A stretch of 64,000 nt of DNA from Oopsacas minuta. Its lineage: Eukaryota; Animalia; Porifera. The stretch spans positions 682,001-746,000 of the forward strand of contig JAKMXF010000310.1 in NCBI GenBank assembly GCA_024704765.1, given 5' to 3'. Below, piece by piece: positions 9,101 through 37,093 of this stretch. Below the pieces are notes generated by a model, which did no database searches, was not told the origin of the DNA, and saw only the letters and a program-made list of their open reading frames with translations. A program made the translations under genes and the position numbers. The stretch's first letter is position 1, and every line of letters starts with the position of its first letter.

Positions 9101-10215
9101 GATATAAACTCAAGTGCTACTGAGACAGACACATTCCTATGTTCGTGTCTCTTGGAGTGCGTCAATGAGGAAAACCAGCAGAAGAAAGCAGAGAAGTCCT
9201 CTCCTTGGAAATAAGATACCAACTCCTTTATTACTTTAGCTCCTCGCGTCTTGTACTGAGTGTGTACAGGACATTTCAGACATATATGTCTAGGTAGGAC
9301 GATAAAAGTAATCTTAGCTTCCCTATCCATCAGTCCTGTATCCAGTATGTAGTTTATGTAGCTAAGAGCTTGTACACATAGTTTCTGTTGAGGCTTAGAT
9401 ATGGTAGAACTGTTCTTGCTATCAACTCCTTTGAAAGTTAGCAGAGGGAATAGATGTTTGATTATTTCAGTCAGAATATCTTTCTCATTCCCGTGTAAAG
9501 GTTTATGTACCTCTTCTACACACAGCCAGGCTAGACGGTTAACTATACACGATTCATCATCTAGAGGGTAGCGAGTAATTACAGAGAACAGGGAGGAGAT
9601 GAGGTGAAACAGAGAGTCAGGATGTAACTGAAATCTGAAGTTCGTAAGCAGGACTTTTATCTCTACCAATATACTATGTAATATCCCTGGTCCTTCAATA
9701 CTACCTTCATAGTTCTCTTCAGCTAATTCAATATCCATATCAAGATCTTCTTCCTGTGTCATGACCTGTACATTGCTTCTCTTGCATACTTGTCTAACTG
9801 AAGAGCTTAATAGCTGTACACACTTGTGGAATACAGCTGGATGGAATAGTTTGTATATATTAGCTCCTTCTACAGAGAGTATACACACATAGCCTAGGCA
9901 GGCACTGAGGTTGAGATTAGTAGATCCGTTGGCAGACACAGAAAGAAACACAGCTGCTGTAATAGTGTCATGACGTACACCTGCCCGCATCAAAATATTC
10001 CACACACCTACTGTGTCCTCACGACAAGAAATACAGAACGATATGAATTCTTGCCAGGAATCAGGTTGATACACTTGGTGATCTGGTGGAAGGGAAAGTT
10101 CTAAATCTAGGAAATTAGTGTTCCAAAGCTCTGTGACAATCTCTTCTGGTATATCAAATACACTCAGTTTATCTTGAAGTAATGATATTGATGTGTCCAT
10201 ATTGAATGTATCCAT
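6169..10215 (-). CDS. NCAPD3: Condensin-2 complex subunit D3, 1348 aa, single exon
   Basis: HEAT-repeat protein with RLLDQKAGVRKSAL and the Cnd1 region LCDMCVRYPNLIENY...LIQEDYIKLKG...YHHFIESIF, plus KKDVIENIIP...LADKQLAEEIEFD typical of CAP-D3. Confidence 0.93.
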   Translation of the reverse strand: MDTFNMDTSISLLQDKLSVFDIPEEIVTELWNTNFLDLELSLPPDHQVYQPDSWQEFISFCISCREDTVGVWNILMRAGVRHDTITAAVFLSVSANGSTNLNLSACLGYVCILSVEGANIYKLFHPAVFHKCVQLLSSSVRQVCKRSNVQVMTQEEDLDMDIELAEENYEGSIEGPGILHSILVEIKVLLTNFRFQLHPDSLFHLISSLFSVITRYPLDDESCIVNRLAWLCVEEVHKPLHGNEKDILTEIIKHLFPLLTFKGVDSKNSSTISKPQQKLCVQALSYINYILDTGLMDREAKITFIVLPRHICLKCPVHTQYKTRGAKVIKELVSYFQGEDFSAFFCWFSSLTHSKRHEHRNVSVSVALEFISTTDIDCEVCIDTISANTTKLYTFLLDWIVRICSDSVSPVRTNALNAIYELSTNSNLPHVQDAIKSLITASGDSTSHLLDLLSNRLLDQKAGVRKSALSALEGVLRLLSSDAIIEWMRPIRKRAFDVSLSVRKQAIISLRELLLSFPNYPPVQDIFLSGLLPLVLDPEASVQERCVEVLMEEIFSQLRPYKTDETELLHSWSLLSHICGEHYSDYHLYFTIFLQRLNKAKKLTAQLISKLITYTTSPNHLDAWRLLALLSEQTESINVDTVYNAWRKAIDTPDRCHHQIFSMIKILSNLHSKLTDFQADKLQMWMSGELEKSTMSPDNIKIYVNALILLCHSKNPANRRPGWFSMWTADMIRNCSVFVKEWLHRAKDISPENLTSEDKFVTSLSLLGELITVSPDEIDPDIPPLIQWALIQKPSLNPDTSLRSIRPDLSPRVRAFICIMFGKLCLVKQDLAYDSPDLLAEELFTSNSVPLKSNIIIILCDMCVRYPNLIENYLSHISPCLKDGSYVVRRQTLTLLTKLIQEDYIKLKGTLIYHLLAVINDTEDELRDLVHYCLKHVLLKKYPRALYHHFIESIFYFQHNSNHPSCNQFTQTDTEIERFCLPGVSNTRKRFNIYNYMLEQLSDEQRFNLSGRIVQEILGSTVDKVLKLNIANSLLITDALSILCSDEIKLSYVKTHSPDNLEDDEREAMEDAVNLQSNMIKTLVKKDVIENIIPTIISMKRLLQKERSPIISNLMGYLHRLKDDYKDKFTEVLSADKQLAEEIEFDIKRYEEDQKQVRRSISMRASLSAAEVVLAHTNLSPVVLLSPHSVSVTKTLRDAKIRSRVENTPAVLQLNRLTNIQSENRRKVASPLSITHNYPVVAIGEGSPELNKTSQRRKKPVKTNRPRARVPKEKKVSFLTPPSLEQDVLMNNTFGSPPLRLNTSLSTSLSARSMSLLTRANVISFSPTDECSGITPPPWNLRLRQGPK

Positions 10216-10236
10216 TTTGATAAACTACGTAGAATA

Positions 10237-10425
10237 CAGTGGAAGCCGCTTAATCGGGATATCCGCTTAAACGGGACAATGGTTTGGGTACAGATTTTTT
10301 ACATAGAAAATCGTCGGATAATTGGGACATTGAATCGGTTAATCAGGATTTCTTATCCCGATTAACCGAATATGAATTATATTCGCTTAATTGGGATTTC
10401 TACCCCAATTAAGCGGCTTCCACTG
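10237..10425. mobile_element. pogo/Tigger-type MITE, 189 bp
   Basis: 18-bp perfect TIR CAGTGGAAGCCGCTTAAT, TA at 10235-36 and 10426-27, and internal subterminal GCTTAA..GGGA motifs. Confidence 0.9.
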
Positions 10426-24883: not shown

Positions 24884-25555
24884 ATGACGTCATTACCAAA
24901 GCAGAGGATAGCTCTCGCTCTATTTGGCTGTTTTAACCCGCCTACCTTCCAGCACCTGAGATTGTTTGAGCTAGCTCGCGACTGGTTACATAAGTTGGGA
25001 GGATATGAGGTAGTAAAGGGGATAATTTCTCCAGTTCATGACAAATATGAAAAGAAAGGACTCATTCCAGCTTCACATCGTGTTGCTATGTTACGCTTAT
25101 CATTAGAAACTAGTGATTGGATATGTTTGAATGAATGGGAGACGAAACAGAAAGACTGGACTCTAACTAATACAGTACTAAATCGATTACAAAGTGAATT
25201 AGACATAGAATATAAAGATAATCTCCCAATACCTAAGGTTGCACTGCTATGTGGAGCAGACTTACTTCAATCATTCTCTATTCCAGGTTTGTGGGCTACC
25301 AAGGATGTAGATGAGATATTAGAGAAGTTCGGTATTGTAGTCATATCACGTGAAGAGATTGATGCAGACAAGATAGTTTATGAGAATGATCAGCTGTCAG
25401 CTTGGTATAGTCGCATTGTATTTGTGAAAGAATGGGTGAGACATGATCTGAGTTCTACAAAAATACGGAGGTGTGTCAAGAGAGGTGAATCAATAAAGTA
25501 CCTAACTTCTGATTCTGTTATTGCTTATATTAAGGAACACGGCCTCTACATTTGA
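24884..25555 (+). CDS. NMNAT: Nicotinamide/nicotinate mononucleotide adenylyltransferase, 223 aa, single exon
   Basis: GCFNPPTFQHLRLFE (GxFxPxT/HxxH), SPVHDKYEKKGL, LLCGADLLQSF, ISSTKIR-like LSSTKIRR and VIAYIKEHGLY motifs. Confidence 0.95.
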   Translation: MTSLPKQRIALALFGCFNPPTFQHLRLFELARDWLHKLGGYEVVKGIISPVHDKYEKKGLIPASHRVAMLRLSLETSDWICLNEWETKQKDWTLTNTVLNRLQSELDIEYKDNLPIPKVALLCGADLLQSFSIPGLWATKDVDEILEKFGIVVISREEIDADKIVYENDQLSAWYSRIVFVKEWVRHDLSSTKIRRCVKRGESIKYLTSDSVIAYIKEHGLYI

Positions 25556-28152: not shown

Positions 28153-29220
28153 ATGTTCATATTCGCTATCTCATTTCTTGCAATCCTACATCTTGTCACT
28201 GTACAGTCTATCCCTGCGGGACACTCTCCTAAGGTTGGTTACGCTTTTGATGGGTATCCTGTGTATGGCCCTTATACAGACGGTGGTGGTTTGCCAACTG
28301 ACTTAGACATTTGTAACGGCAGGAACCATCCCAGTCTTGGATACCTGTATCATACCACTGTGAGTGCTCCTTACACTTTTGGCTGCTATGCTGGTGAGGT
28401 TTTATGTGCCAACTTTAATATGAACGCTCCTGCTGGTTGTCTGTCTAGTCCTCCCTCTTCTGGAGCTACATCTCTCACATGCACAGACCTTGGCCTTATT
28501 TCTGGAGTTAGCATCAAGGAAGTACCTTGGACAGTCATAGAGACTAATGTCCCTTCTCGTGTCCGCTGTACAGTTGAATCATGTGCTTCCACTGCTCCTT
28601 ACTGTTGGCATACAAACAACACCGCGAATACAGCTTATACCTCTAGTATCAACTGTGTGGAGAATGGTAACCGTTTGAAGATTACAGCAAACGGAGTACC
28701 TAATCATTTTATAGGAAAATTCCCTATGAGCGAATCAACATATCATCTAAACAGACCTAGTGATAATCCTAACTCACTATCCGAGCAATCATTCACTTGG
28801 TATATCCCCAAGTATCCAATAATGAAATCTGTGTTTCCTACTCAAAGTATTGTAACTGATGTCAATGCTCTGCCATTTGGTCCTACTGGCTTTGCGATTA
28901 ATAGCGTACCATTCTTTAACATGTATAATATGGGTATGCTAGATGCTGTGGATGGGTCTGAAGGTTTTGAGGTGCTAGACATGTGTTTGGGACATCCACA
29001 GATGTTTGGAGCTTACCATTATCATACTACTCCACACTGTCTTATCAATGAATTAAATGGAGTTACCAATGCGGTAAGTTGTGGTAATTCAAATAATGCT
29101 GCCACCTCATCACCTAACCCAGTTGTCACAAACTCACCTAACTCTACTACCAACTCTCCAACTATTACTCTGGTCCTGCTAGTGACTCTACTTTTCTTGA
29201 TTGTATTATTCCATGCATAA
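28153..29220 (+). CDS. Secreted, probably GPI-anchored YHYH-family protein with permuted domain halves, 355 aa
   Basis: Signal peptide aa 1-19. HSPKVGYAFDGYPVYGP..DLDICNG..YLYH at aa ~24-83. ITANGVPNH..GPTGFAINSVP..DMCLGHP..AYHYH at aa ~177-300. S/T/N-rich stalk and a hydrophobic C-terminus with no cytoplasmic tail. Confidence 0.88.
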   Translation: MFIFAISFLAILHLVTVQSIPAGHSPKVGYAFDGYPVYGPYTDGGGLPTDLDICNGRNHPSLGYLYHTTVSAPYTFGCYAGEVLCANFNMNAPAGCLSSPPSSGATSLTCTDLGLISGVSIKEVPWTVIETNVPSRVRCTVESCASTAPYCWHTNNTANTAYTSSINCVENGNRLKITANGVPNHFIGKFPMSESTYHLNRPSDNPNSLSEQSFTWYIPKYPIMKSVFPTQSIVTDVNALPFGPTGFAINSVPFFNMYNMGMLDAVDGSEGFEVLDMCLGHPQMFGAYHYHTTPHCLINELNGVTNAVSCGNSNNAATSSPNPVVTNSPNSTTNSPTITLVLLVTLLFLIVLFHA

Positions 29221-29449: not shown

Positions 29450-31791
29450 TAGGGCTTGCAATCCCGGGATTAATAATTATTACAATTATATAATCAGTTT
29501 TATTTTATTGAATGAAGTTAAGCTTTGCTGCATTTACGCACAAGATATGTAATATGTGTAATATAATAATGAACTTGGCCTATCATATTTATTATCTATA
29601 TTTAACTTGTTATTTCTAATGAAACATAGAGTGTTTAAAGTCCTGTCGCTCAATCCAGTTCTAAACCTGTTGCATGGATATGCACAAGAAGAGAATATTC
29701 TTTCTGCTTCAACCGAGGTTGGTGGTACTGAAAGCAACATCCTGTAAACTTTCTCTAAATAGTGACCTCTTCTACCTGTTTGCTCAGCAATTGTTAATTC
29801 ATATTTCAAACATGAAGATAATGATTGTTTACTTTGCGCAATCTCTTGAGGTTGGTCATTGAAGCATCGATTCCTAGTTGCAATTTCTTTGCTATGGGTA
29901 GCGTTTCTGTGCCAGCAATTTCAGATGTGATTTCTGAACTTGAGTTACATGTAGCATTATTGATATCTTCTCCCATATCCTCGCTTTCACTCATTTTGGA
30001 TAATATATCATAACAAAATTTGTTAACCACTCCTTTCTTTTCTAGTTTTGCTGTAGGGTTATGTAAATATGCGATTATGACTGAAGCATCACTATAGCTT
30101 TGCTGAATAATCCGTTCTTCAATTGCTTCAAGAATTCTAGTTTTGTAAACGGAAGTAGAATAATTTGTATTTCCTCTAATAGAAACTTGATAGTAGCTTC
30201 AGCAGATATAAAATTCGCATCCCGTCTACATAAGACTTCTACTGCTAGCTTTAATGGGTCCAGTGTTTTGACAATAATTAGAATGTGCGTAAGCTCGTCA
30301 TCATTAATATTGATCCCTATTTCAAGATCAAGTAGAGCCTTTTGGACAGGTTTCTTTATTTTAACAATCCTCTCAAGCATGCTTAGAAGTGAGCTCTAAC
30401 TAGTTTTACAATCGAGAATGAGATTCAAACCGTTTGGATGTGTCTCTTGTACATAACCCTGCAGAATTTCGTTTTTTAGAGGAGAAAGTTTGAAAAGTTT
30501 CACCACTTTACGGACTTTGTTCACTAATCAATTAATATCCATACTTAACTTTAAGATATTTTATCGTGTTCTTTACCATCAGCACCTATTACAGTTAATC
30601 CATCTGTAGTTTCTTCTTCATCAGAAGCTTCCTCATCTTCAGATCACTTGAATAATTACAAAATTCTTGCAAGCTACTAGATTGTTTCTGATAAAATAGA
30701 TCTTGTATCACAAGCTGAAGTCCGTGGGCGTAACATAATTGTTGAATTGAAGGAACTAATCGTCCAAGTTTTTTCACCATCGGACATCCATCTGTAGTAA
30801 TAGCCACGATATCAGTTTTAAAATCAATTCCAAATTCACAAAGTTTTTGGGAAATAGTATCATAGCATATATTTCGGCTGAAAATCTTCCATGTATCCTG
30901 ACTAGTCCGAGATTCCAAAAATATCCAATGCCATGGATGTTGATATTTAAGTATCTTTTATTCCGCAAGGATGTCCACTCGTCTAAAGTTAGGCTGAACT
31001 TCTCACCTTTTGTCTTTTTGAGGACTAAATCACGCTTAATCTTTTCAATTACATGTGAACCATATTTGATTACATGATCTCGTATTCCATTTACTGACTT
31101 TGGTAATGTATGGCCAAGTGCCATAATAGATTTTCGTAGATCCTGTAACTAATGAGTATACTAAAGGAAAGCCCGTCACATGCAGTCATTCTTGCAAGTA
31201 CTGCAGAGAGAGTATTATCTTGAAGAAAATAATCAATTTTGTAAAATTTTGTAGGTTTTTCTTCAGTACTAGCAGTTTCGATTATTGTTAAATTCTTACG
31301 TTTTAATAGTTCAATGTGATGTACTGATTTAGATGCACATGTAATCCCTTTGTTGACCCGCCTTCACACTTTAATATATTCTTACATATTTTGCATTCTA
31401 CCAATTTCCAACTATAAGATTTTCTGTAATGTTGCCAAATCTGGGCCCCAACGAAATCTTTAAATTGAATCTTTTCAGCCATACGAATGAAGAGAATTAC
31501 AGGGAATAGTAAGGGAGTTTAGCCACGTCATATATGCAGTTATTATAGAACTATATTTGTATGAACCTATTCGTCGATGAATCACTATAACAGGTGGTTA
31601 AAACCAATTAATTGGCTAATTTGGCTTCAAGTGAAAATAGAAAATACATCTTTTGGTCAGTGGTAGAAGGTGGCAAAACAATAATGGGGAAAATGAGAAT
31701 AGTTTCATAGTAACTGAAGTTAAGCCAATTGCACTCACAAAAGAGAACAACTAACTTATACAAGTTCGGGATCCCAGGATTGCAAGCCCTA
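29450..31791 (-). mobile_element. hAT transposon, defective, 2342 bp
   Basis: 21-bp TIR TAGGGCTTGCAATCC(C/T)GGGAT (20/21 match) and 8-bp TSD gtccaaat/ctccaaat (7/8). Fragmented transposase with a BED finger (CKIC..HL), FSLTLDEWTS, TTDG and the hATC motif PPTSVEAERIFS. Confidence 0.93.
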
Positions 31792-32089: not shown

Positions 32090-35000
32090 ATGGAAGAACT
32101 TTCCCGATGCTTAAATCTCCCTCCCTCTCCTAAACAACTGACTCTATTCGATGCTATTTCTCTTGATTGTTTCATGACTAATTCGAAACTCTCTTCTAGA
32201 TCTGATCTCCCACGCTACATGTTAAGAAGGATAATGCTATTAGATACTTCTTGTAGAAAACTGCCTAGTATCAGACAAGAGGAAGCTCCTGGTAATTTCA
32301 ATTCCAAATCATTATCATTCTTAGATGAAGAAGAAGATGACGATCTAGTTCATCCAATGGATATATTTCTCTATTTGTTCTCGATATCAACTCCTATCTT
32401 TAGGCAAACTATTGTCAATCAGTTAGCCAAGTGTCAGCTGTCGCTCCCACTCATAACTCATGACAGTGATCTGATTGAGACTACTCTGAATCATTTTTCA
32501 TTCGAAACTGCCATTTTGAATCGTTATGTAGGTGAAACTGATGCAAAGTGCTTTTCTGCTCTGAAAGAACCTCTCCCGATTGTGTCATTTATTAGAATTG
32601 GAGGAAGCGATAAAAGTCAAAAATCAGAATTATTGAATATAATCCTGAATATTAGACACGATTATTTCTCTTATAGAAATTCTCCTGGTAGTACAAGGAA
32701 GAGATTACTTCTAGATGGCACAGTTGAAATTGCTTGGTACCTACCAAAGTATAAAGAAAATATGAAAATTAATCACCACTTTATTATGCTTAATCTTAGA
32801 GGAGATTCCAATCTGTTTGATAAACAATCTACTTTTATTGGTCAAATTTCTACATTAGTTTATGTATTTGTTTCTCTTTCAAAGCTGACACAAGAAATAT
32901 CAAATCAATTAGAGAACATTCATAGAACATTCAAATCTAAAGTTATATTTGTTGTGTATAAAGAATCTAGAAAAAAACTTGAAAACATTCCTAACCTTTT
33001 GGAAAATAACAATAATATATTACCTATTCGGAAAAATAACCCAAGTGATGACTCTGACGAAATTGCTGCATCTATCTCACATCATTTAGATAAGACTAAT
33101 ATTCTTCCTATCTCGTTATCACAATGTGTCGATATAGCAAGTAAAATTGGAATAGTTTGTGATTTTGATAAGAATGATTTTGCATTGAAACAACAGTGTA
33201 TTGAAACTATCTGTAAAGATTTTCCTAAAAGTATTCCTGATGGTGAAAATCCCCCACCTCTTGCAAATATGAAAGACAAATTATTGCCTCTTCAGCGATA
33301 CTTCAAAAGCTGGGCTGACTCTAATCGAGAATTACAGCTCCCGATTAGTGATCGTACGAGAAATATGGATGAATATTTTCATAGTGCGAAGGAGAAACAA
33401 GACAAAGCTAGATCCTCCCAAATACAGGAATTATTGAAGCCTTCAAATTTTTTGTGCGGGATAATGGATGAATGTGATAAACATTTTCGTGATACACATG
33501 AAATTGACCTATTTTTCGTATTACTGAAAGACAACTTAAATTCCATATCTAGAAAATTTCTTCCTATCTTATACAATCAGTATAAAAGATGGATAACCGA
33601 ATCTTACTCTGTGAATTCAGAATCAATTGGGGCTGAGAGAGACGCCAAGCAAAACAAGGCCAAAAGTTGTTTGATGAATGCTGCAGAAGCCATTACTCAT
33701 TCATCACTAGGTATTGAGCATGTATTTCGTGAATTCGGTCAGATATACGAAGCTGTCATCGCTAGTAATGATGCAAAATTGAAGGCTAGTGTAAAAGGCA
33801 AACTTAAATTCCCTCCTACTTACCTACCAGAAATTGCAGTCCATTTAATTCTTCATGGACACTCATTCGAGATTGTGAATGGAGATGACAATCACGTTCC
33901 TCTCACATGGGTATCTGACGTACTAACTAAACTATCTGAAATTGTAGGGCCAGACAAGAAGTTATTCGTGGTTTCAGTTCTTGGTATTCAAAGTAGCGGA
34001 AAATCTACACTACTAAATACAATGTTTGGTATTAATTTCCCGGTATCATCAGGTCGCTGTACTCGTGGTTTGTTCCTACAGATGATACCAATTACTAAAG
34101 AGCTCCGGAGCAAAGTTGGATATGATTTTCTTTTGCTTCTCGATACAGAGGGACTCCGAGCCCCAGAACTTTCTGGAGGTCTCTCCTATAAAAGGGATAA
34201 TGAAATGGCAACATTCACTGTAGGATTAGCGGATTTAGCTCTGATTAATATAAAAGGAGAGAGTCACTCAGAAGTTCAGGATATCTTGCAAATTACCATC
34301 ATTGCATTCATGAGAATGAAATTAACTTTGAGAAAGCCGAAATGCATTTTTGTGCATCAAAACGTGGGTGATATTCAGGCAGGAACCAATTTAATGATAG
34401 CAAGGAGGAATCTAATCGATACTTTGGATGAAATGACTAAATGCGCTGCTCAACAAGAGAACAAAGAGTTACAATTTTCCCATTTCTGTGACCTCATAGA
34501 ATTTGATCCTGAACAAGACGTATTCTACTTTCCAAGCCTTTTTGAGGGAGATCCCCCGATGACTTCTATAGCACCTGGATACATAGAGAAAGCACAGGAG
34601 CTGAAAACGAAGATCATAGCAAATTATGCAACTAAAGATAAAATCTTCCAATCTGTGAAAGAGTGGAGGAAAAAATTATCAAATCTATGGAACTCAGTGT
34701 TAAAGGAAAACTTTGTATTCAGCTATAGGAATATTCTTGAAATCAATGCTCGTATTGAATTGGATAGTGCTATGTGTTGTTGGCATTCAAACTTCATACA
34801 AGCTATGGCAGCTGTCAAATCTGAATTCATTAATAAACTCTACAATGTTGAGTCTGAATTTCTTCAAGATACACTGCAAGACATTAATACCCATCTAATT
34901 AGAATAGTTCAAGAATATTCACAATTCGAAGAGTTGAATGACTACTTTTTTGTTCAGCACGAGAAGAAAGTGATTTTTGAACAGTGGAAGTTTAGCACCG

Positions 35001-37093
35001 AGCTATACTTTGAATGTTGCAAAAAGAAAGAAATAGAACGGATACGTAAAGATTGTGAAACTATTTGCAATGTTGAAAGACAAAAACAAGATATTGATAA
35101 TAAGTTTTCGATTTGCAGGAAAGAATTGTTTATTGAAGTACGACGTCTGTTTGACATACACAATGATAAAACGTATTTTGATGAGACAGGTATTGTTAAT
35201 AGTCTATTCGATACATTTTGGAAACGCTGGAAGTCATCCTTTCATTACGTTCCTGTTGAGAGCACTGATATATCGAATGATCTACGACAAGTGTTGGTTG
35301 AGTATTCTCGCTTGAAACAACTTGATGTGTTTAAAATGAAGCAACCTTTGATTTTAGATAAAAATAAATTCAAATTAATAGGGATGGATGAGTTTGATGA
35401 AATTTACAATATTCTTTCGATACTCCATGCTGAAGAACATTGTTATTATACAATTATTGACTATCAACAAAGCACTATGAGGAAATTAGTTAATTACTTT
35501 CATCTGTCTAAGGCTCAAAATTCAAATTCAAATCAACAGGAACTTCATTGTCTACTTAACGATCAGACTAAATTAATAGACGATATTATAAAAAATTCCC
35601 AAAAAATGCTAATTACTCGATTGAGTATTTTAAATACTTAATTGACAAATGTATCAGCCTGATAACAGAACACAATGCATCTGAAAAGAAAACTAACGCT
35701 CGCCAGGCGATTATATTCACGAATCATTATATTTTTGATTTTACATTCTATCAATGTTGTAGAGCTATTAAATCATTTGAAGAATTGCAAGAAGGTTTTA
35801 TTGAACAGAATAGCTTAGAATTTAAACTTGAATCACTAGAATCTATTTCGAGAGGAATATTTTCCCAACTCTGTTCAGGTATTAAATCTGAGAATATATG
35901 CGCTGATGTATTAACTTCAATCATTTTAACTGGAATCAGAATGTATCTCAAAGATACAGTACTCCAACTCATGCAAAATCTATTTGTTAACTATCCAGAA
36001 CATGGTACAATCTACTCTAACCGAGGCTCCCTACAGCTCTATATCCTCAAGGACTTAGCTAAAAAGAAGGATTTTAAGGCTTATATTTCGTATATAAGCT
36101 CTCCATTCGGGTATATCAATTCAATCATTCATAATAATATTCTAGAATATTCCCAAAAAGAGACTGTGGTAACTAATATTTTAATTAATATAAACCAATG
36201 TATTCATAATCTCAAAACTCAATGTATTGATGCAGCCAATTCTGTTTCTCAAAACATAGACTCATGGGATGAATGGAAACAGCATTTCATAAATCTATCA
36301 TCAAGTTTGTAAGGAGTGTAAAACTCAGTGACTTGATATTTTGAATGTTCATATTGTAAATAATTATAAACAGTTTTCAGACTTATTTGCACAAATGTTA
36401 GAAGCTTCGATTGGAACTTTCGACTGGAGAGCATGGATCTCTGAGGTCTTGACTTTAGATCTTTTTAATGAAATACAAGAGAATATTCTTATTTCATTAA
36501 TTGAATGTAAATCATTATGTCCATTCTGTAGAGAACCTTGTCAACTATCAGCTGGAGAGCATGAACATTACTGTGGAACATTCCACAGACCTCAAGGGCT
36601 CAGTGGATGGCGTTATCTACAGTCTCGTAAAATAGTTGTAGAAGAATGTACTACAAGTATTCGATGTGATATGAGATTTAGATACAAAGAAGAATTTTAT
36701 AACTACTCAGACTACAGAACAGTAAATGAGTATTTCAATTCCTGGAGGATCTTAGGAGACGATTCAATTGACTCTAAATACTGGCAGTGGGTTCTCTACA
36801 CGTTTCAGAAGGAATTTGTTGCCTACTACGAAATTTTAGAAAATGAAAAGATAGACATTGCTTGGTCTAATCTCACTGAAGAAGAAATTATTAATGATAT
36901 TGAGAAACATTATGAAATTTTATTTTTAAAAATTTCTAATTGCTCCCGAATTAATACTTTTATATTTACCTTACTAAGACGATTAGATTTGTACATTTTA
37001 GTTATTTATGTCAATGTTTTTGTGCTAATTGTAGCTACTAGTGGAGAAGATTTTTCTAACCAGCAACTTAGGCATAGGCTGCTATATAAATAA
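32090..37093 (+). pseudogene. GVIN1: Very large inducible GTPase (GVIN1/VLIG/URGCP family), about 1600 aa once three 1-bp indels are repaired. Pseudogene or assembly error
   Basis: GIQSSGKSTLLN (G1), GRCTRG, LLDTEGL (G3), FVHQNV, N-terminal HPMDIF and DGTVEIAWYLP, C-terminal CPFCREPC..HRPQGL. Frame breaks at ~35606, ~36310 and ~36335. Confidence 0.9.

Follow-up and report, generated by a model that had tools for sequence, protein, structure and literature searches.

A glass sponge gene for a circularly permuted YHYH-domain protein and its eukaryotic relatives

Can the two halves of a protein domain stand exchanged in a natural animal gene and, if so, does such a chain still close as one domain, how widespread is it and where did it come from? 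This question is raised by a locus of the glass sponge Oopsacas minuta, located in a 64,000-nucleotide stretch of contig JAKMXF010000310.1 (positions 682,001 to 746,000 of the forward strand; "the window" hereafter designates this whole stretch), in which an earlier note, made from the letters alone, had pointed to a gene for a YHYH protein with its halves in reversed order. The corresponding open reading frame (ORF) in the ORF list lies at 28153..29220 on the plus strand and encodes 355 amino acids (aa) plus a stop from an ATG start. Here, we argue that its product (the window protein, P0001) is, with high likelihood, a secreted and probably glycosylphosphatidylinositol (GPI)-anchored protein made of one circularly permuted YHYH domain of single, old origin, which folds in cis and is conserved.

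Swapped order of the YHYH halves

Scanned as a whole, the window protein matches the Pfam family PF14240 (YHYH) in three stretches (58.4 bits against a cutoff of 25, E=1.2e-15) and carries the conserved motifs NG.P.H, D..GH and YHYH of this family, while no family is assigned to it in NCBIfam. When the protein is scanned in pieces, aa 24-41 correspond to profile positions 93-110 and aa 237-307 to positions 14-94: the profile's C-terminal half precedes its N-terminal half, and the hits are split and reversed, as the earlier note had expected, and not colinear. The same order is recovered with half-specific hidden Markov models (HMMs) made from nine bacterial canonical proteins (A for the first half, B for the second), which place half B at aa 23-78 (independent E-value 2e-9) and half A at aa 160-295 (2e-20). 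These models also read B-then-A in the other six full-length relatives, which a word-index search retrieved at 50-78% identity, and A-then-B in 20 of the 20 distant hits of the first search. Finally, BLASTP against a canonical protein of the sponge Sycon ciliatum yields two exchanged matches, P0001 103-291 aligning with Sycon 17-198 (41% identity, E 3e-46) and P0001 18-84 with Sycon 209-276 (63% identity, E 1e-29). The window protein is a homologous member of PF14240 with a permuted topology, and the swapped order of its halves is confirmed as genuine, far beyond chance.

The gene and the modules of its product, which together form the architecture signal peptide–B–X–N–A–stalk–hydrophobic tail, are as follows:

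28153..29220, plus strand: permuted YHYH-domain surface-protein gene, complete, single exon (Pfam PF14240 and ORF list)
28153..28215, plus strand: predicted signal peptide, aa 1-21 (h-region Kyte-Doolittle 2.95 over aa 3-12; equivalent in all orthologues; dN/dS 0.39)
28216..28404, plus strand: module B (= repeat R2), aa 22-84 (Pfam profile 93-110; half-B HMM; 63% identity to Sycon 209-276; four strands spaced as in the Sycon model)
28405..28473, plus strand: connector X, aa 85-107, with C85 and C96 (B-to-A forms only, shared Cys pattern; predicted local distance difference test score, pLDDT, about 90)
28474..28680, plus strand: module N, aa 108-176, Cys-rich (sponge-based N HMM; BLASTP alignment)
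28681..29052, plus strand: module A, aa 177-300, with NGVPNH, repeat R1 at about aa 240-295 and D276/H281/H289/H291 (Pfam profile 14-92 at aa 237-306; half-A HMM; dN/dS 0.04)
29053..29157, plus strand: Ser/Thr/Asn/Pro-rich low-complexity stalk, aa 301-335, with invariant C310 (80% S/T/N/P/G/A, counted over the 40 aa preceding the tail; pLDDT <50 at 313-335; dN/dS 0.33)
29158..29217, plus strand: hydrophobic C-terminal tail, aa 336-355, resembling a GPI-attachment signal (Kyte-Doolittle 3.31 at aa 338-352)

Canonical sponge YHYH proteins (Sycon ciliatum XP_065178600, Oscarella pearsei, O. lobularis, and Corticium candelabrum), as read with sponge-based module HMMs, follow the order signal peptide–N–A–B–stalk–tail, module B being the C-terminal half of the canonical domain that comes first in the window protein. 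They have modules N, A (R1), and B (R2) in common with the window protein at 41-63% identity, as well as a predicted signal peptide, a low-complexity stalk, a hydrophobic tail or transmembrane segment, an intact R1 motif, and a degenerate R2 motif. They differ from it in the N-A-B order, the 4-14 aa junction between A and B, the lack of X, the tether that leaves from B and, for Sycon, five exons against one here. The N HMM matches right after the signal peptides (Sycon 22-82, O. pearsei 21-78, and others), and the canonical mature N-terminus is a short Cys-containing motif that is located at aa 108-118 in the window protein. Because of this location, the "Cys-rich linker" described in the earlier note turns out to be largely module N: a Cys-rich segment does separate the halves, but much of it is the conserved module at aa 108-176 and only X, at aa 85-107, is new. 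The new termini are opened at the short A/B (R1-R2) junction, and the connector of ~23 aa, to be compared with the canonical 4-14 aa, joins the old C- and N-termini.

The two halves are themselves related. Profile–profile comparison with hhalign aligns R1 (the last 60 residues of A) with R2 (B) at 98.1% probability (E 1.3e-13), MAFFT stacked the A pieces of canonical proteins on the B columns unprompted, the half-HMMs cross-match weakly, and BLASTP gives A/B cross-matches at E 4e-4 and 0.009. On the basis of these comparisons, the canonical domain is best described as an internal duplication, N–R1–R2, and the window protein as R2–X–N–R1. In the window protein, R1 keeps its motif intact (D276, H281, H289, and H291, plus H185 in NGVPNH at aa 180-185); that of R2 is degenerate (GR.H, YLYH), a state which the sponge and Chromosphaera relatives all share, whatever their topology. 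The fate of the two motifs varies across the family as follows:

Bacteria: R1 motif intact, R2 motif intact
Sponges and Chromosphaera: R1 motif intact, R2 motif degenerate
Protist B-N-A arrays: R1 histidines lost, R2 motif intact
Brittle-star (Amphiura) 11-half array: R1 motif lost, R2 motif lost

Within glass sponges, the B-to-A architecture is present in at least six other hexactinellid sequences, one full-length relative being a transcriptome ORF of Vazella pourtalesii (Hexactinellida) flagged complete, and the gene is also single-exon in relatives on long contigs of separate ENA assemblies (L001 and L002). In an alignment of nine sequences, 12 cysteines never vary, and both the hydrophobic segment at the N-terminus and the hydrophobic tail at the C-terminus are conserved. 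Compared with the L001 gene, the ratio of nonsynonymous to synonymous substitution rates (dN/dS) is 0.116 overall and, by module, 0.04 in A, 0.09 in N, and 0.13 in B; values are higher for the signal peptide (0.39) and for the stalk and tail (0.33). The permuted form is maintained by purifying selection.

Spread and origin of the permuted form

When 1.84 billion representatives were searched exhaustively by profile, 2178 relatives emerged; of the 150 best representative clusters, 5 have the B-to-A order. The permuted form is therefore rare but established, a small minority of the family, and far from being its common arrangement. Outside hexactinellids, the same permutation, which the earlier note had proposed to look for in other taxa, is found in Chromosphaera perkinsii, in a gene of a metagenomic contig (L004), and in protist arrays from MMETSP (P0033 and P0182/P0041); the uniqueness that the note implied does not hold, since several eukaryotic lineages carry this order. 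The protein of Chromosphaera (P0034, EP01135_P000485), an ichthyosporean placed by published papers as a close relative of animals, combines the B-to-A order with a predicted signal peptide and a hydrophobic tail. On L004, a GC-rich (63%) metagenomic eukaryotic contig, the permuted YHYH gene (730-1814) is complete and divided into three pieces in shifted frames, and what interrupts it appears to be two short introns. Its identity to the Chromosphaera protein is ~50%, and the gene caller's 344-aa product enters the first gap out of frame. The protist proteins P0033 and P0182/P0041 are tandem arrays of B-X-N-A units with Pro/Thr-rich spacers between units. They differ from the sponge protein in this tandem organization and in which repeat keeps its motif: R2 in these arrays, where the histidines of R1 are lost, and R1 in the sponge protein. 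The Chromosphaera, L004, and protist proteins share with the window protein both the B-X-N-A order and the connector pattern, X being found with the same Cys pattern after B in all B-to-A forms and being absent from the A-to-B forms. Further glass sponges have the swapped order too, as do a unicellular relative of animals and some protists; the permutation is therefore an old variant and no isolated case.

Where sponge relatives are named, the permuted topology is restricted to glass sponges, Calcarea (Sycon) and Homoscleromorpha (Oscarella) being canonical. Apart from the B-to-A proteins already known, the search with the Sycon protein retrieved nothing but proteins of N-A-B order, none of them from a hexactinellid, the search having been made by Sycon query and not over whole hexactinellid genomes. 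The literature found, whose incomplete coverage makes it weak evidence of absence, holds no mention of a permutation of the YHYH domain or PF14240. Some canonical-order relatives of the Sycon protein (P0206, P0209, P0212, and P0214) terminate not in a hydrophobic tail but in a Cys-rich module, recorded in P0214 as an antistasin domain (PF02822), and the YHYH module thus seems to be deployed with different C-terminal attachments.

To what extent does this distribution reflect one event? In a tree of 88 units inferred on the rearranged A and B regions, all B-to-A forms fall in one 22-row clade with Sycon, Oscarella, and several long A-to-B proteins (Shimodaira–Hasegawa-like approximate likelihood ratio test, SH-aLRT, 91), and hexactinellids group with Chromosphaera (SH-aLRT 89). 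A constrained tree in which all B-to-A forms make up one clade has a log-likelihood 34.9 units higher and a p-AU of 0.83 in the approximately unbiased (AU) test. That the topology arose several times from tandem arrays, in hexactinellids, ichthyosporeans, and protists, would agree with the two changes on the free tree, with the wide occurrence of arrays able to seed permutations, and with the internal R1/R2 repeat, which may make the fold tolerant of permutation. We nonetheless regard several origins as unlikely, given the homologous X connector, with its same Cys pattern in every B-to-A form and its absence from A-to-B forms, and the higher likelihood of the one-clade tree. A single origin of the B-to-A form is not rejected by these data, and the shared connector favors it.

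The simplest route to a single permutation would start from a tandem array of the canonical N–R1–R2 domain, both ends of which would be trimmed to leave R2–X–N–R1, the old C-terminus of R2 being joined to the old N-terminus of N via the 23-aa Cys-containing connector X. This event would have taken place once, before glass sponges, because the B-to-A order is also that of an ichthyosporean protein, of another eukaryotic gene that appears to be spliced, and of protist arrays. The duplication followed by trimming that the earlier note invoked is indeed plausible because tandem arrays of the domain exist, which are the expected intermediates: ABAB in a scallop, ABABAB, an 11-half array in the brittle star Amphiura, and (B-N-A)n in protists. 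Swaposin, when compared with saposin, is a classical example of a circular permutant explained by duplication and trimming. The likeness lies in homologous halves that are swapped, in a new linker between the old termini, and in plausible intermediates in the form of tandem duplicates; the present case differs from it in concerning another, uncharacterized fold without solved relative and in having both topologies within one animal phylum. Exon shuffling was also considered as a mechanism and is unsupported: the Sycon homologue spans five exons over 8.7 kb, and its four introns lie off the module borders, the A/B junction being inside exon 3.

Predicted fold of the permuted chain

If the halves are exchanged, can they still meet within one chain? 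We modeled the window protein with AlphaFold2 from an alignment of naturally colinear B…A rows, and obtained a compact model with a mean pLDDT of 82.1 and a predicted TM-score (pTM) of 0.79. Its ten-residue pLDDT blocks range from 80 to 97 across B, X, N, and most of A, with values of about 90 in the connector. The canonical Sycon protein yields a model that is compact like that of the window protein (pLDDT 74.7, pTM 0.72), and the strands of the two models pair one-to-one in cyclic order:

Module B strands: Sycon 218-222, 227-229, 247-250, 254-258; window protein 27-31, 36-38, 56-59, 63-67
Module A strands: Sycon 121-126, 150-154, 159-161, 187-189, 195-197; window protein 214-219, 244-248, 253-255, 280-282, 288-290

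In both models, each repeat (R1 and R2) forms a four-strand unit with equal spacing. The best ESM Atlas match of the window model is a canonical YHYH cluster (TM-score 0.65 by target, root mean square deviation 2.7 Å), aligned over residues 104-304 only, as expected because a sequence-order-dependent aligner met a permutant. Solved structures offered no counterpart: a sequence search of the PDB with the window protein returned nothing, Foldseek against the PDB with its model gave a best E of 0.31, and a VIA wide structure search retrieved no chain at Z >=2, an unusually empty result that may partly reflect the tool. The modeled fold thus appears to have no detectable solved relative, in keeping with the description of a YHYH-family protein as a novel-fold candidate in a 2026 preprint (bioRxiv 10.64898/2026.10.18.759936).

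Permuted or linker-altered domains can domain-swap. The earlier note had suggested that halves unable to close in cis might complement each other in trans, which would give domain-swapped dimers or polymers on the cell surface. We consider this very unlikely, as the predicted monomer is one compact fold (pTM 0.79, pLDDT >87 across B, X, N, and most of A), as the path from B to A, of ~80 aa, consists of the ordered connector X and of module N, and as the Pro/Thr-rich spacers between protist B-N-A units imply that each unit folds alone. In the comparison of AlphaFold monomers that the note had recommended, the strands correspond to those of the canonical protein one by one in cyclic order, with no support for open halves. 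Because the modeled monomer is compact and its connector ordered, the prediction supports a chain that folds in cis as one domain, with obligate trans complementation unsupported; on this basis, the permuted chain would close on itself.

Ancestry of the locus, membrane tether, and predicted role

Genes that flank the YHYH gene in L001 and L002 have counterparts in the window at 40.6-41.5 kb and 0.3-1.1 kb. Because the matches concern both positions, the YHYH locus is syntenic with these contigs, and the window is enlarged by insertions, the gap between the YHYH gene and the syntenic downstream gene being ~11 kb in the window versus ~3 kb in L001. This synteny bears on the possibility, raised in the earlier note from an intronless gene and a mainly bacterial domain, that a bacterial YHYH gene was recently transferred horizontally and permuted afterward. 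The gene is indeed intronless in Oopsacas minuta and the family is abundant in bacteria. However, the nearest relatives are eukaryotic (hexactinellids, Chromosphaera, Sycon, Oscarella, Corticium, and MMETSP protists), bacterial proteins reach only 27-35% identity over ~40% of the query, the Sycon homologue is spliced, as is apparently that of L004 with two introns, the locus is syntenic among hexactinellids, and the GC content of the gene is like that of its surroundings. One member of the clade moreover adjoins genes for saposins, which are a eukaryotic family. A recent transfer is therefore highly improbable. As for an artefact of gene model or assembly, in which the canonical order would reappear once exons not seen, or a tandem gene that has been truncated, were taken into account, it is conceivable in a eukaryotic genome with homologues spliced elsewhere, but it can hardly be credited when the predicted signal peptide begins at the ATG itself with an in-frame TAA 12 codons 5' of it, the hydrophobic tail and stop complete the ORF, tblastn with canonical proteins finds no YHYH-like coding sequence outside this ORF on either strand of the entire 64 kb, and independent assemblies and the Vazella transcript ORF flagged complete carry the identical full architecture.

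The surroundings of the gene give some indication of what fills the window. A 91-aa ORF at 29537-29809 on the minus strand contains the hAT family C-terminal dimerisation region (PF05699, E 3e-7), a transposase remnant ~320 bp downstream of the YHYH gene and one of the window's insertions, beside which the short minus-strand ORFs at 29806-30380 have no Pfam match. A single 1183-aa ORF (32090-35641, plus strand) with a URGCP-like domain and a URGCP-like GTPase domain (PF25496 and PF25683; E 1e-49 and 4.5e-113) lies in the interval that runs from the YHYH gene to the syntenic gene downstream (40.6-41.5 kb), and a 223-aa ORF at 24884-25555 on the plus strand has a cytidylyltransferase-like domain (PF01467, E 1e-19). 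In L002, a second, inverted and partial permuted YHYH copy (9853-10377, minus strand), ~74% identical to the A half of the window protein, lies at the contig end tail-to-tail with the first, and this hexactinellid therefore has at least two adjacent paralogues.

With regard to localization, the C-terminal tail has a 15-aa hydrophobic segment (aa 338-352, Kyte-Doolittle 3.31) with small residues upstream and only 3 uncharged residues after it. A hydrophobic tail recurs in hexactinellid orthologues, Chromosphaera, Sycon, and O. lobularis, and O. pearsei has instead a transmembrane segment and a charged 20-aa cytoplasmic tail. The signal peptide and GPI-like tail reported in the earlier note fit simple rules and recur in orthologues; the window protein is probably secreted and GPI-anchored.

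What the tethered domain does can be approached through its motifs. According to Iyer et al. 2021 (PMC7824862), the "enigmatic YHYH domain" of bacteria and phages is predicted to hold a Zn site formed by a His triad plus an Asp, with a hydrolase role. The N-Zinclopedia preprint predicts a three-His metal site, and states that no YHYH-family member has been experimentally characterized (bioRxiv 10.64898/2026.10.18.759936). Bacterial and phage PF14240 proteins (Iyer et al. 2021, PMC7824862) are connected to the window protein by the significant HMM match, the motifs NG.P.H, D..GH, and YHYH, and the retention of the predicted site in the window R1. The bacterial proteins differ in their A-then-B order, in lacking module N and most cysteines, and in having both motifs intact. 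The family-wide Asp and His motif residues being kept, metal binding, which the earlier note had read from His, Asp, and Cys motifs, is plausible for the former two in view of the site predicted in PMC7824862; the part concerning cysteines is not supported, as the 12 hexactinellid-invariant cysteines look like extracellular disulfide cysteines. The window protein may thus be a surface-tethered, metal-dependent extracellular enzyme or binding module in which the intact R1 motif (D276, H281, H289, and H291) would provide the site, a hydrolase role in particular being possible but somewhat doubtful. Two side observations touch on this subject. Prokaryotic YHYH domains among the ESM Atlas matches are fused to He_PIG, DUF305, PBP (PF01161), and sulfatase domains, which are possible substrate leads, and the 1529-aa protist protein P0182 (L005 204-4793) fuses a multicopper-oxidase domain (PF07731) to three permuted B-N-A units, which may hint at a copper or redox context for the family. 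A histidine brace like that of lytic polysaccharide monooxygenases at the new N-terminus was considered and rejected, His24 lying several residues past the likely cleavage site.

Several points have to be counted against the overall interpretation of a single old permutant that is conserved, cis-folding, and tethered. The free tree search required two topology changes, and only the starred branches and the AU test leave a single origin open. The AlphaFold2 alignment contained junction-spanning array segments, and the folds were compared by strand positions. In the L001 comparison, dS is near saturation. The gene structure in Oopsacas minuta is read from the genome sequence, GPI anchoring rests on simple rules only, and the metal and hydrolase roles are literature predictions for a family with no experimentally characterized member. 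With these points weighed, we still hold the interpretation given at the outset to be likely. What has been observed is the permuted order and its conservation, the internal repeat, the relatives with tandem arrays, a predicted fold that is compact, and purifying selection; GPI anchoring, metal binding, a catalytic role, and a single origin are inferred.

What, then, does this locus add? The YHYH domain has a wide distribution, from bacteria and phages to diatoms and animals, and is without solved structure or tested function. The permuted form is an old, shared variant of this known but uncharacterized domain family; it is not a new kind of system and does not resolve the function of the domain. 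New here are the make-up of the domain, as N plus two homologous repeats, and a conserved, natural permuted subfamily, which has canonical counterparts within its own phylum as well as array relatives that look like the duplication intermediates, and which thereby offers a test case for folding and evolution. For annotation, the lesson is that colinear HMM matching under-scores permuted YHYH proteins. For the sponge, the permutation moves the membrane tether from the end of R2 to the end of R1, a shift that may influence the orientation of the predicted active site toward the cell surface. For the family as a whole, we would propose, with slightly less than even confidence, that a single ancient permutation of a fold without solved relative created a second YHYH topology before the animal–ichthyosporean split, with permuted glass sponges facing canonical Calcarea and Homoscleromorpha as a 41-63% identical pair within one phylum, and that the reciprocal decay of the repeats, holozoans keeping R1 and protist arrays R2, suggests that one His/Asp site may suffice and that a pseudo-symmetric repeat may be what makes this fold permutable.

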